A stretch of DNA of 64,000 bases, taken from the NCBI GenBank assembly GCA_002269645.1, contig NIVC01003629.1, positions 1 to 64,000 of the forward strand. Reading direction: 5' to 3'. How positions within the stretch are numbered: the first letter of the stretch is position 1; each line of letters starts with the position of its first letter. The stretch comes from Macrostomum lignano. Taxonomy: Eukaryota. Shown here piece after piece: positions 13,037 to 25,705 of this stretch. The notes beneath the pieces are model-generated. The model did not search any database, was not told where the DNA came from, and saw only the letters and a program-made list of their open reading frames with translations. The translations under genes were made by a program, and so were the position numbers.

Positions 13037-16000
13037 TCAGTGAGCGGCCCCCTGGCTGACTCTGCCGAGTACTTTCTGCAGACTGCGGCATTTGTCGTCA
13101 AGCTGCTGGCAGCGCTGCTCGGCCACTTTCTGGCGCTGCTCGGTGACCTGCAGAGCCTTCATGAGCTGGGCATTCTCAGCGTAGAGCTCTTTTAGCAGCT
13201 GGTCGGTCTTGGCCGTTCGCTCAAGTTGCTTCTTCATTTTCTCCGTCTGCTCGGATAGCAACTGCTGCTGGCGCTCCATCTTCTGCTGCATCTCTTCGCG
13301 CTCTCTACGCTCATTCTGCACCTGCCTTTGGAAGCCTTCCTGGGTGTCTGCAAGGGAGTCAGTACAGGACTTGATATGATAACTGTAATTGATGGGCCAG
13401 ATGTACAATCGACAGCTCAGCCGCAGCTATTGCGCGGTGCATTTGAAGGCTGCGTACGGCTGTTCAGTCCAAGGACTGGGGGGGGGGGGGTCGCCACACA
13501 CATCCTTAATTTCCCCAGCTAATGCTGGCACCCATTTTACAGCTGGGTGAACTGAAGCAATGCAGAGTTAAGTGCCTTGCTCAAGGGCACAAATTGTTTC
13601 ATTGGGGATCCGGAATCGAACCATAGACCTTCAAGTCGTGAGTCTGATGCTCTAACCCCTAATAAGTCTACAACCCCTCTCTAGATGATTAATAAAAAAG
13701 TATAAAGTCTTATACAACTTGATACGAACTTTTTTTGAACCAACGCTACTGACTATATCACTGTGTACCTGCAACCAGTAATTTACAGTACTAATAAAAA
13801 TTAACAACTCACTCATTAGCATCTTCGAGGTCTCAGAATTCTTCATATTGAGCGCTTTCTCCAGTGTATCAGCTTTCTTTTGAGCTTCGTTGAGCTTCTG
13901 AATGAGCTCGTTGTAACGGTTGCGATCTGTGCGGTCTGTGCGCAGCTGGTTATTGAGCTCTTCCACCTGAGCCTCCAGCGATCGCTTCTCATCCAGAAGC
14001 TTCTCCGCCTCGAGCTCCTTTTTGCGCAGATTTCTGTCCAGCCGGTTGGCGAACTCTTCCGCAGCCTTCCTGGCCGAGTATTGGCCCTCGGCGTCTTCCT
14101 GACAGGTTCGAAATTCGAATTTAGATCTTCCTTTCGGTACACCCTGTGAGTCTTAGAGCTTGGCCCTCATGGCTGGGAACCGCACGACAACCCCCCGAAT
14201 TAATTGGCCTATGGGTCGCCACACACAGCCTCAATTACCCCAGCTAATGCTGGCACCCATTCTACAGCTGGGTGAACTGAAGCAATGCAGAGTTTTAAGT
14301 GTCTCTTGCTCAAGGACACAAATTGTTTCCGAGTAGGATCGAGAATCGAACCACGGATCTTTCAGTCTTGAGTCCGACGCTCTAAGCGCTAAGGCTACAA
14401 CTATCCCATATTCCCCAGTTAAACAGTATTCCCTGACTTTTTTGCTTTCCCTGACAAGACAGCGTCAAGCACAAACCTTGAGCTGGGCGAGTTCCGCCTC
14501 CTTCTGCGCCACCTGAGCCTTGGCAGACTTCACCCGCTGCTCGCAGTCCCTCTCCAAGCGTTCAGCTTTGCTCCTGTCTTCGGCTTCGCTGCTTCGAATA
14601 GCGCCTTCGAGATTGTCGTTGAATCTCTGTTGGATTTGGAAGTATGAATCTGTGCAACAGAAATCTCACAATATTTTTTATTACAGGCAGGGGGCTGTGT
14701 GTACCCTGGTGCACTTTAAGCGACATTGTCACACAACTGCCCAGCAGGCACACAAGCGCGCGGATACGTACGCAGTCATACGCACAGGCACACACTCACA
14801 CAGGAGTGTACAGCTGCCCTAACTTTATTTATCGTTAGGCATGTACACTTCACTGTGCCCTGGGGGGTTGGCTCTCAAGCTGGGCGTTAATTGCACGAGC
14901 AGAGCCAAGCCGAGATTCCAATTTAGCCCCAAATTAATGCGACTGCAGTTGGAATCGAGCCTGGGCCGCTGGCACATCAGAGCGCCGCGCCAGACCACTG
15001 GGCTGCGGGCCCTCTACGTTTCACGTTTGGAATTGCGACAAAATTTCAGAAGACGGTCACCGTTATCAAAATGAAGCATGCAAAATAGAAAAGATTTGAC
15101 CAACACCAAAACTCAATAGATACTACTCATATTTCGTTGCGATACCTTCAGCTCTTTGTTTTCCCGCTCTTGAGCGTTGAGCATGTTCTGAACTTCTTTA
15201 ATTTTAGCGTTTAGATTTTTCGTCTCCATTAGTAGGTCATCATTTTCTTCCTGTGTATTGTGTTTTGTCATTAAAGGAGTTTAGATTCAACGGTTATGAT
15301 ATTCAAATCACTCTACTACAAGTAATAGTTTTTAGAATAGTCAATTAAAAAAAATTGCGCTGACCTTCTCGCGTTCGACTTTAATCTCGGCGGCTTTGAG
15401 TTTGTCTTTCAGTTCGGCGACTTCGCGGCTCAACTCGAGCTTCTGCTTGGTCAGACGGGAGTTCTCGAACTGGTGTTGCGGAGAATGGGAGATGGGTGTT
15501 TTAATAGGGGTGACCAGGTGTGGCAACCAAAGGCACATGTTACCCCAGAGGCTAACCTTAAATAAACTAAATTCCTCAGTTAAGACAGCCCTACATTCCT
15601 CAGTCAAGACAGCCCTACATTCCTCAGTTAAGACAGCCCTACATTCCTCAGTTAAAACAGCCCTACATTCCTCATGGTTAAGACAGCCCTACATTCCTCA
15701 GTTAAGACAATCCTACATTCCTCAGTTAAGACAATCCTACATTCCTCAGTTAAGACAGTCCTACATTCCTCATGGTTAAGACAGCCCTACATTCCTCAGT
15801 TAAGACAGCTCTACATTCCTCAGTTAAGACAGTCCTACATTCCTCAGTTGAGACAGCCCTACATTCCTCATGGTTAAGACAGCCCTACATTCCTCAGTCA
15901 AGACAGCCCTACATTCCTCAGTTAAGTCAGCCCTACATTCCTCAGTTAAGACAGCCCTACATTCCTCAGTTAAGACAGCCCTACATTCCTCAGTTAAGAC

Positions 16001-25000: not shown

Positions 25001-25705
25001 GTGTAATATATCATGAAACATAGTACGCATATAATGAACACCTATTCTATATATCAATAGAGTACTGAATGGCACAAGTAATAGGTTATTCGCAAAATTA
25101 TACATGACTTGTATATGCCCGTATGGCGTGGGTTGATTACGTTTGTACCTGAGATGACTTGAGCAGATTTTTTGAGCTGATAAGTAGCTGAATTTAGAGT
25201 TGAGGAAATTAAAATGTTTGCAGAACTTTTGTGTGGATTGAAGGTTATTTTACAGATATTATCTACCAGGATTTAACAAGTCACTCTCTCTAATCCAACA
25301 GGTAACAATATTATTTAACCGGTGACACTCTCTAATCCAACAGGTAACAATCTGCAATTATCTAACCGGTGACTCTCTTTGATCCAACAGGTAACAATCT
25401 GTAATTATCTAATGAAGTAGTAGGTAAAAAGTAGTATATTATCTATTTCTCCGAAACGCAACAAACTCAAAAAGCTGATATCAAAGCTGCCTCACCTTCT
25501 CTGCGGCATTAACAGCAGCCTCATTCTGCGCCATCTGCTCCATCGCCTCCTCAGCTTGCTGATTCTGCATCTGCAGCCGCTCGTTCGTGGAGTTCAGCTC
25601 GTCCACTTTGCTGCGATAATTGTCGTCCAGGGTTTTGCTTCGACGAAGTTCATCGATTTCTTTCTCGAGTTGAATTTTCAGGTTCTGCATTTCTACTCGC
25701 TCGTC
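13037..25705 (-). CDS. nin: Ninein C-terminal coiled-coil region
   Basis: E/K/Q/R/L-rich heptad sequence over 20 exons; last exon 13037-13347 carries the ninein-family C-terminal motif and the TGA stop. Confidence 0.88.

Follow-up and report, generated by a model that had tools for sequence, protein, structure and literature searches.

Five-heptad exon units in the coiled-coil rod of a ninein-family gene

The window, meaning the whole 64,000-nt stretch of DNA that was analysed, carries on its minus strand a gene of the ninein/ninein-like family that runs from 45320 to 13041. Its N-terminal part includes an EF-hand pair (38889..39925, minus strand) recognised by the Pfam models EF-hand_7 (E=4.2e-14) and EF-hand_6 (E=2.9e-12), and the same region was hit by ninein-like proteins in tblastn (E=1.7e-28). 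A Loxodonta ninein-like protein matches the N- and C-terminal parts at E=3.5e-47 (identity 33%, coverage 74%). Conserved pre-rod exons of 175, 117, 36 and 27 nt follow in the gene model (37310..38295, minus strand), the first two of which equal, in length and phase, exons of the ninein-like gene of the sea urchin Diadema setosum; the product of that gene has a Pfam Ninein_mid match and a faint Ninein_long_CC match. At the other end, two C-terminal exons (14098-13813 and 13347-13041, together 13041..14098, minus strand) are separated by a phase-1 intron and encode a conserved ninein C-terminal motif, LLK[ED]LYVENA.L.KAL.VTE, which tblastn with ninein-like proteins placed at 13384-13043 of the window (E=4.5e-15 and 8e-14). 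The sequence-only reading had called the gene ninein, and this holds at the family level, given the EF-hand pair, the Loxodonta homology and the two exons in common with the sea urchin. With ninein and NINL (NINL/Nlp; Drosophila Bsg25D) it has in common the EF-hand pair, homology in the N-terminal, middle and C-terminal parts and a long C-terminal coiled coil.

This coiled-coil rod is encoded by 17 exons, all on the minus strand. The first (25496..25705), 210 nt long and with phase 0 on either side, holds two 35-residue units and aligns to residues 138-206 of P0001, the protein of the closest database relative, from the monogenean flatworm Cichlidogyrus casuarinus (contig L001). It is followed by a 51-nt exon (24804..24854, phase 0 at both ends), whose peptide matches P0001 AENELLKIEKKHNELLQ and whose preceding intron is common to both genes, and by a 126-nt exon (24534..24659) of 42 residues, or six heptads, with a gap-free alignment to P0001. 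Next come two 105-nt unit exons, 23674..23778 and 23453..23557, with 105-nt counterparts at 395-499 and 780-884 on L003, a Logan contig from a third species; the intron downstream of the former is also present in Cichlidogyrus. The two-unit exon 21572..21781 (210 nt) has a 210-nt counterpart on L003 (1509-1718) and lies inside a 420-nt exon in Cichlidogyrus. Unit exons 21375..21479 and 21092..21196 (both 105 nt) correspond to 105-nt exons on L003 (2154-2258 and 2338-2442), the latter also to one on L001 (1915-2019), and the intron downstream of the former is again common with Cichlidogyrus. Exon 20467..20772 (306 nt, 102 residues) has one clear unit together with degenerate units and a predicted heptad stutter, the register break being predicted near residue 509; its Cichlidogyrus orthologue is also 306 nt long and is 43% identical. 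Unit exon 20264..20368 (105 nt) has a 105-nt counterpart at L001 3419-3523, with both flanking introns in common. The remainder consists of 19692..19967 (276 nt), 18007..18456 (450 nt, from the dynamic-programming splice model), unit exon 17636..17740 (105 nt; one of the seeds of the unit HMM described below, scoring 36.9 bits), 16781..16972 (192 nt, or 120 nt with the alternative donor at 16853, the P0001 alignment favouring the longer form), unit exons 15365..15469 and 15146..15250 (both 105 nt, AG/GT, phase 0) and 14477..14626 (150 nt), the last exon of the phase-0 run.

Exon borders were predicted from the sequence and from conservation in the two other species. All eight 105-nt and both 210-nt exons have AG before, GT after and an open phase-0 frame on the minus strand, and the 126-nt exon (24659-24534) has AG/GT borders and an open phase-0 frame as well, which bears out the lengths originally read for these eleven exons; the other rod exons of the gene model measure 51, 306, 276, 450, 192 and 150 nt. 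Beyond the called borders the open frame usually extends just 0-36 nt. A splice-chain dynamic programme that was free to use any of the three phases assigned phase 0 to all rod exons. The programme took its codon table from coiled-coil exons; the 126-nt exon, the full length of the 192-nt exon and the repeat array were set by hand. About 41 consecutive phase-0 introns had been proposed from 35865 down to 14477. The phase stood and the count became 40 (donor to donor) in our gene model, a run that takes in the 22 exons of an upstream insert without support from other species.

That insert, of about 25 predicted exons between the pre-rod exons and the rod (26453..37081, minus strand), is absent from the Cichlidogyrus gene: in P0001, the residues GMNK are followed immediately by the counterpart of exon 25705. 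As a further difference from ninein and ninein-like genes, the window gene may carry a large ELQWL-repeat insert. The ELQWL array itself (33787-28518, minus strand) comprises seven exons of 189 nt and five of 315 nt, with variants of 279 and 309 nt. Since its copies are 87-95% identical in DNA, it provides at most two independent lengths, and its diverged relatives (174, 180, 162, 123, 144 and 285 nt) include no multiple of 21 nt. The array arose recently, by tandem duplication of a helical repeat that is interrupted by proline; a single-sequence AlphaFold prediction of one 315-nt array exon, of low confidence (pLDDT 66.5), was all helical with breaks. The lengths of 189 and 315 nt had been read correctly, and their interpretation as heptad quantisation fails. 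ARAGORN found no tRNA in a SINE-like stretch near 36530-36700.

Within the rod proper, exon lengths are quantised. Multiples of 21 nt make up 11/17 rod exons (binomial P=2.7e-6 against 1/7) and multiples of 105 nt make up 10/17 (P=5.9e-12 against 1/35), both tested against these binomial expectations over the 17 exons. As ten of the exons are multiples of 105 nt, the real quantum is 105 nt.

The Cichlidogyrus gene offers a comparison that was annotated independently, though it is itself a gene prediction. P0001 mapped exactly onto L001 as exons of 612, 282, 420, 105, 306, 105, 105, 96, 210, 606, 222, 126, 336 and 168 nt, with phase 0 at 13/13 introns. The window protein and P0001 are 35% identical over 1190 aligned residues. 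The alignment is almost gap-free across about 475 residues, and at six positions the introns of the two genes match exactly; gaps in the alignment make intron homology uncertain over the C-terminal half of the rod. Two of the long Cichlidogyrus exons are sums of window exons (282 = 51+126+105 and 420 = 105+210+105). On L003, exons of 105, 105, 210, 105 and 105 nt with AG/GT borders are colinear with window 23778-21092, and intron positions are common to all three species. An intron is absent from the start of unit 353 in all three (3/3), so that one early loss there, or else gains elsewhere, has to be assumed. With regard to the origin of the pattern, the three species do not count as independent tests.

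Outside this group the layout was not encountered. In the sea-urchin ninein-like gene, exons of 105 nt are absent, just 2/22 exons are multiples of 21 nt, and the rod has an exon of 1022 nt. When all 1.84 billion representative proteins were scanned with the 306-nt exon, only P0001 and a Logan protein matched. Word-indexed protein searches gave P0001 as the sole rod orthologue; altogether no rod homologue was detected outside Cichlidogyrus and one Logan sample, and Pfam gave only sub-threshold matches to generic coiled-coil families on the rod. The 35-residue exon layout thus appears restricted to a lineage, as judged from the sea-urchin gene, which lacks it.

Two readings can be weighed on this evidence. 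Borders that are predicted from sequence could be suspected of reflecting chance or a faulty gene model; however, the P value for 105-nt multiples, the identical lengths in two other species (one independently annotated) and the position of most borders within 0-36 nt of the end of the open frame leave this reading a negligible probability. Neighbouring exons of equal length could instead be mutually exclusive alternatives, with one per group used in each transcript, and indeed they are adjacent, equal in length and phase and weakly similar. This is contradicted by Cichlidogyrus, where the units stand in series within single exons (the 282- and 420-nt exons above), and by the colinear, gap-free alignment of the two proteins, and we rejected such an exon cluster as extremely unlikely.

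Heptad positions were assigned with our own scoring rather than with Marcoil or DeepCoil; the model uses generic scores that were set by hand, without training on these sequences. Under every jump penalty tried, 15-16/17 rod introns fell between heptad positions e and f, and these include introns flanking exons that are not multiples of 21 nt; the intron downstream of exon 19692..19967 is one of the two off e/f. The same model put 10/13 Cichlidogyrus introns at e/f, while ten sea-urchin phase-0 introns that were examined were scattered over seven different heptad junctions. Core residues show heptad periodicity along the window rod: lags in multiples of 7 scored 0.1-0.8 against -0.26 +/- 0.16 for other lags, and the Viterbi path had 4-9 register breaks in about 870 residues.

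The exons had been described as not obviously similar in sequence, which needs correction. The 35-residue units have a mean pairwise score of 15.9, compared with 6.2 +/- 1.3 when heptads were permuted within units (z=7.4), and z was still 4.7 after removal of two residues at each unit end. When units were shifted independently by multiples of 7, 17/3000 controls reached the observed score. A lag autocorrelation that is blind to exon borders peaked at 35, 70 and 105 residues in the window, more weakly in Cichlidogyrus and not at all in Diadema. The codons next to the splice sites, with K or Q as the last residue of an exon and E or K as the first, account for part of the unit signal; 8/12 units have K at position 35 and 9/12 have E or K at position 1. 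Overall, the units are weakly but significantly alike, and on these comparisons they are probably homologous to one another. An HMM of the unit, with the eight 105-nt exons as seeds, scored Cichlidogyrus units at 4-8 bits, with shuffled sequences reaching 4.2 bits, and was dropped as evidence of homology between species because of these marginal scores. There are also hints of a higher-order super-repeat of three units (105 residues).

An intronless repeat array might have gained its introns later and independently at a recurring proto-splice site, AAG/GA (K/E). Such a site does recur, with the residue preferences just given, and unit 353 starts without an intron in 3/3 species. Against this, more than 12 independent gains at homologous positions would be needed, all predating the divergence of the three species; K/E junctions are frequent elsewhere in the rod without introns; and the fused unit multiples of Cichlidogyrus look like intron loss, not gain. 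We regard late gain as improbable.

We favour instead the tandem duplication of a five-heptad exon, kept in place because this coiled coil rarely accepts insertions or deletions, and consider this account probable. Ancient duplication of such an exon had been one of two explanations initially put forward, and it gains support from units that are alike in register, from unit exons that have phase 0 at either end and from introns common to three species; a 35-residue layout found in two other species points to a preserved trace of exon duplication and not to chance. The C-terminal rod (~850 residues) would be an array of 35-residue, five-heptad modules, the majority of which have kept a 105-nt exon to themselves, descended from an ancestral 105-nt exon with phase 0 at both ends that was duplicated in tandem together with its intron. 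Each intron would then be a unit junction and so lie at the same heptad position, e/f, and a coiled coil that tolerates almost no insertions or deletions would have frozen the 105-nt lengths. Duplication of three-unit (105-residue) blocks may have come later, as is hinted. Subsequent intron loss would have fused adjacent units into exons of 210, 282 and 420 nt, and rare heptad stutters or skips within units would have given exons of 306, 192 and 150 nt that kept f as their first heptad position and e as their last. We infer this order of events, and likewise that the pattern persists because the rod does not tolerate insertions and deletions, and not because of selection on splicing.

On this account the gene structure mirrors the coiled coil, with one exon per five heptads and introns at one heptad position in three species. 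It would date an event in which exon duplication rebuilt the ninein rod in one lineage, and would indicate how strongly that rod resists insertions and deletions; the rod of the sea-urchin gene, in contrast, has neither 105-nt exons nor the 35-residue periodicity. A close parallel is found in fibrillar collagen genes, with their primordial exon of 54 bp and exons of 45, 54, 99, 108 and 162 bp. As in the window rod, lengths are multiples of a structural repeat, a single intron phase is used and duplication of a primordial exon is the origin. The window rod differs in that the repeat is the coiled-coil heptad and not Gly-X-Y, the quantum is 105 nt and the pattern is found in one lineage of one gene family. 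That repeats can grow by duplicating a symmetric primordial exon is an old and accepted principle, and our finding adds a case to it, not a concept. Myosin heavy chain and intermediate-filament rods are long heptad coiled coils as well and have a periodicity of longer range (28 residues in myosin). Intron positions in their genes are not known to follow the structural repeat, whereas 15-16/17 introns of the window rod do. Our literature search turned up no previous account of exons phased to the heptad, either in ninein or in other coiled-coil rods.

Since nearly all rod exons begin at f, end at e and are phase 0, removal of any of them keeps frame and register, so that, as a by-product, nearly any rod exon could be skipped with both intact. 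The second initial explanation built on this property: selection at the level of splicing would keep exons heptad-phased, and skipping or including them would alter the length of the rod, making it a modular molecular ruler, with a step that we put at ~5 nm (35 residues at about 0.15 nm per residue). In its favour are the phase-0 ends of all rod exons combined with 15-16/17 introns at e/f, and the non-consensus donors in 7/8 of the 105-nt exons (gtgcca, gtaatt, gttgta, gtgcgg, gtctga, gtcagc and gtatcg). The precedent is nebulin, with exon-sized modules of about 31-35 residues that are alternatively spliced to set length (PMC7754682). However, frame and register preservation follows automatically from unit-exon duplication, the weak donors are not statistically distinct (GTRAG in 1/8 of the 105-nt exons versus 4/9 of the others), and Cichlidogyrus has lost many introns (exons of 282, 420 and 606 nt), which argues that separate exons are dispensable there. 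Selection of this kind is unlikely in our view. It also seems unlikely that the 105-nt exons act as cassettes whose inclusion or skipping adjusts the ninein rod in length by ~5 nm steps.

If true, cassette skipping would tune the spacing between the microtubule-anchoring/dynein-binding head and the C-terminal anchoring end, and the cassette rod would correspond, as a coiled coil, to the spliced ruler of nebulin. Heptad-register-preserving exon skipping is in any case a concrete hypothesis that RNA data can test. The idea is modelled on nebulin, a molecular ruler whose module exons can be skipped: its actin-binding modules of ~30-35 residues form seven-module super-repeats and include alternatively spliced Z-repeat exons (PMC7754682). 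Its modules are single helices that bind actin via SDxxYK, unlike the heptad coiled coil of the window rod; the two have in common modules of ~35 residues, and the super-repeat of nebulin has a hinted likeness, of three units, in the window rod.

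The ninein-family gene is large and runs on the minus strand from ~45320 to 13041 in the window. It encodes an EF-hand pair at its N-terminus (Pfam, E=4.2e-14), and its N- and C-terminal parts match a mammalian ninein-like protein (E=3.5e-47). With sea-urchin and mammalian ninein-like proteins as queries, tblastn recovered the middle region as well as the EF-hand region (E=1.7e-28) and a C-terminal motif (E=4.5e-15). The ninein-like gene of the sea urchin Diadema setosum was mapped exon by exon, and its 175-nt and 117-nt exons have the same length and phase as 38295-38121 (175 nt) and 37796-37680 (117 nt) in the window. 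Given the EF-hand pair, these matches and the exons in common with sea urchin, the name ninein used in the sequence-only reading is correct as a family name, NIN and NINL being indistinguishable for an invertebrate.

The C-terminal coiled coil (the rod, 25705-14477) was modeled by a splice-chain search with hand correction, which yielded 17 exons with predicted borders, in order 210, 51, 126, 105, 105, 210, 105, 105, 306, 105, 276, 450, 105, 192, 105, 105 and 150 nt. Although all three intron phases were permitted, phase 0 was picked for every rod exon. The ten exons originally listed by coordinate (eight of 105 nt and two of 210 nt) have AG/GT flanks, a phase-0 open frame and the lengths claimed, and the claimed 126-nt exon was found at 24659-24534 (minus strand). 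As the open frame stops 0–36 nt beyond the called border in most rod exons, these borders have little room to shift. The long phase-0 run proposed for 35865-14477 was also recovered, but with 40 consecutive introns in our model instead of about 41. Since all rod exons are divisible by 3 nt, the null for a multiple of 21 nt was set at 1/7, and that for a multiple of 105 nt at 1/35. Multiples of 21 nt account for 11/17 rod exons (P=2.7e-6) and multiples of 105 nt for 10/17 (P=5.9e-12), so the quantum is 105 nt (35 residues), not just 21 nt. Elsewhere in the gene, apart from the 189/315-nt array described below, 0/17 modeled exons had a length divisible by 21 nt (leaving aside those furthest 5', near 45320 and 39900).

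The sole rod homolog among 5.8 billion proteins was P0001, a hypothetical protein from the monogenean flatworm Cichlidogyrus casuarinus, with 34% identity across 85% of the rod. Exact mapping to its contig (L001) gave exons of 612, 282, 420, 105, 306, 105, 105, 96, 210, 606, 222, 126, 336 and 168 nt. Each of the 13 introns is in phase 0, and 8/14 exons have lengths divisible by 21 nt (P=2.3e-4). Global alignment with the window protein (35% identity, 1190 residues) is almost without gaps across the first ~475 rod residues, and six intron positions coincide exactly. The 282-nt exon equals window exons of 51+126+105 nt, and the 420-nt exon equals 105+210+105 nt. When 1.84 billion representative proteins were searched in full by HMMER, the 306-nt exon matched only P0001 and one Logan protein. 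L003 (run ERR14224704), the contig of a cluster-mate of the latter, is genomic and comes from a third species; its exons measure 105, 105, 210, 105 and 105 nt, have AG/GT borders and are colinear with 23778-21092 of the window, at 30–58% protein identity. The sea-urchin gene has no 105-nt exon; it has a rod exon of 1022 nt, and 2/22 of its exons are multiples of 21 nt. Two details of gene structure were also seen. First, the annotated 612-nt first exon of P0001 (L001 342-953) carries 12 residues (VCSKLSTLMNFK, 36 nt) that are missing from the window protein; as they sit precisely at a window intron, they are probably a tiny in-frame intron read through by gene prediction. Second, the counterpart of the 306-nt exon at L003 ~2745-2945 apparently stops after 201 nt, at AAG|GCAAGA, which may be a GC-AG intron with no equivalent in the window or Cichlidogyrus.

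Heptad register was assigned using a seven-state model with generic, untrained scores. By this model nearly all exon ends fall at one heptad position: 15–16 of the 17 rod introns lie between positions e and f (e|f), whichever register-jump penalty is used. The same model places 10/13 Cichlidogyrus introns at e|f, while the sea-urchin phase-0 introns examined (n=10) spread across seven heptad junctions. Rod exons of 306, 192 and 150 nt, which are not multiples of 21, each run from f to e singly, the 276- and 450-nt exons do so as a pair, and the model puts a stutter or skip within such off-quantum exons. Considering that these also run from f to e, the rule of the rod as modeled is one exon per 35-residue unit, cut at e|f, from which the length quantization follows.

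The sequence-only reading described the units as not obviously similar; their similarity is weak but significant. An in-register alignment of 12 units shows a common pattern, with L at positions 6, 13, 20 and 24, I/L/V at 17 and 31, and K at 27 (a d position) and 35. The mean pairwise score was 15.9, compared with 6.2 +/- 1.3 when the five heptads were permuted inside each unit (z=7.4; 0/3000 controls as high), and z was 4.7 after two residues were trimmed off each unit end to remove splice-site codons. Autocorrelation along the window rod, which did not use exon borders, peaks at lags 35, 70 and 105; these peaks are weaker in Cichlidogyrus and missing in sea urchin. Every third unit is closer to its counterparts (scores 42–67): units at model-protein residues 248, 353 and 458, 105 apart, form a sub-family, and the series includes residue 560 (23778-23674, 21676-21572, 20772-20668 and 20368-20264, minus strand). 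In the window and Cichlidogyrus alike, the best-scoring unit distances are 3 and 6, and autocorrelation is higher at lag 105 than at lag 35. In this small sample, the sequence hints at a three-unit super-repeat (105 residues, 315 nt).

Tandem duplication of exon plus intron is likely the simplest account of the rod pattern, as the sequence-only reading had partly proposed. A five-heptad exon with phase-0 ends would have been duplicated along with its intron, possibly followed by further duplication of unit blocks. Exon lengths would then have been frozen, because the rod accepts almost no insertions or deletions, and some introns lost, extensively in Cichlidogyrus. It is possible that introns were instead gained independently at a K|E proto-splice site that recurs from unit to unit, but this requires many parallel events. 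We consider it improbable that rod exons are skippable and set rod length by splicing, as also proposed: dropping almost any of them preserves frame and heptad register, a structural prerequisite, but Cichlidogyrus can do without these introns. Because single Cichlidogyrus exons hold units in series, we ruled out that the units are mutually exclusive exons. The rod of this gene is probably a repeat protein made by exon duplication and in this resembles collagen, whose 54-bp exons are the classic case. The modules of nebulin are a second parallel (PMC7754682). We found no prior description in the literature of a heptad-phased exon pattern in a coiled coil.

Duplication of another kind is found upstream of the rod, where ~25 predicted exons lie between the pre-rod exon end at 37310 and the rod exon at 25705. 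This insert (37081-26453) is not present in P0001, as the flanking pieces are contiguous there. Its first exon shares a phase-1 end and a basic patch with the sea-urchin exon at the same place, so the start of the insert, at least, may be ancestral. Seven exons of 189 nt and five of 315 nt, plus 279- and 309-nt variants, encode a helical repeat with an ELQWL motif. The tandem two-exon unit (189 + 315 nt) occupies 28518-33787, and more divergent copies lie at 34553-33878 and 28445-27079 (minus strand). The repeat is ~50–60 residues long with the motif PELQW[LI], and copies are 87–95% identical in DNA. It has no Pfam match, and a single-sequence AlphaFold model is all-helical with breaks, at low confidence. 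While 189 and 315 nt are multiples of 21 nt as claimed, the older, diverged copies are not; the array stems from recent tandem duplication, not from the heptad quantization first proposed.

Long minisatellites fill many ninein introns (15567-16741, 17100-17445, 17821-18010, 18524-19162, 22029-23341 and 34651-35153), among them a 24-mer x 49, a 20-mer x 66 and a G-rich 17/67-mer array; some retain long open frames and could mislead gene finders. Huge G-rich minisatellite blocks at 5047-7846 and 11667-12260 likewise create open frames that are long but spurious, in both strands. An intronic stretch at ~36530-36700 reads like a reverse-oriented tRNA-derived SINE (ggttcgattc, with a box-B-like motif), and ARAGORN called no tRNA there. 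The neighboring gene upstream of ninein has a PARP catalytic domain (48864-50790, minus strand; Pfam PF00644, E=2.6e-12). Downstream, an LTR-retrotransposon pol fragment in broken frames (1674-3954, plus strand) contains RT-RNase H and integrase zinc-binding domains and is preceded by a gag-like zinc knuckle, and an open frame encoding a pair of RPEL repeats (8606-8992, plus strand; Pfam E=3.5e-17) looks like an exon of a Phactr- or MRTF-type actin-binding regulator.
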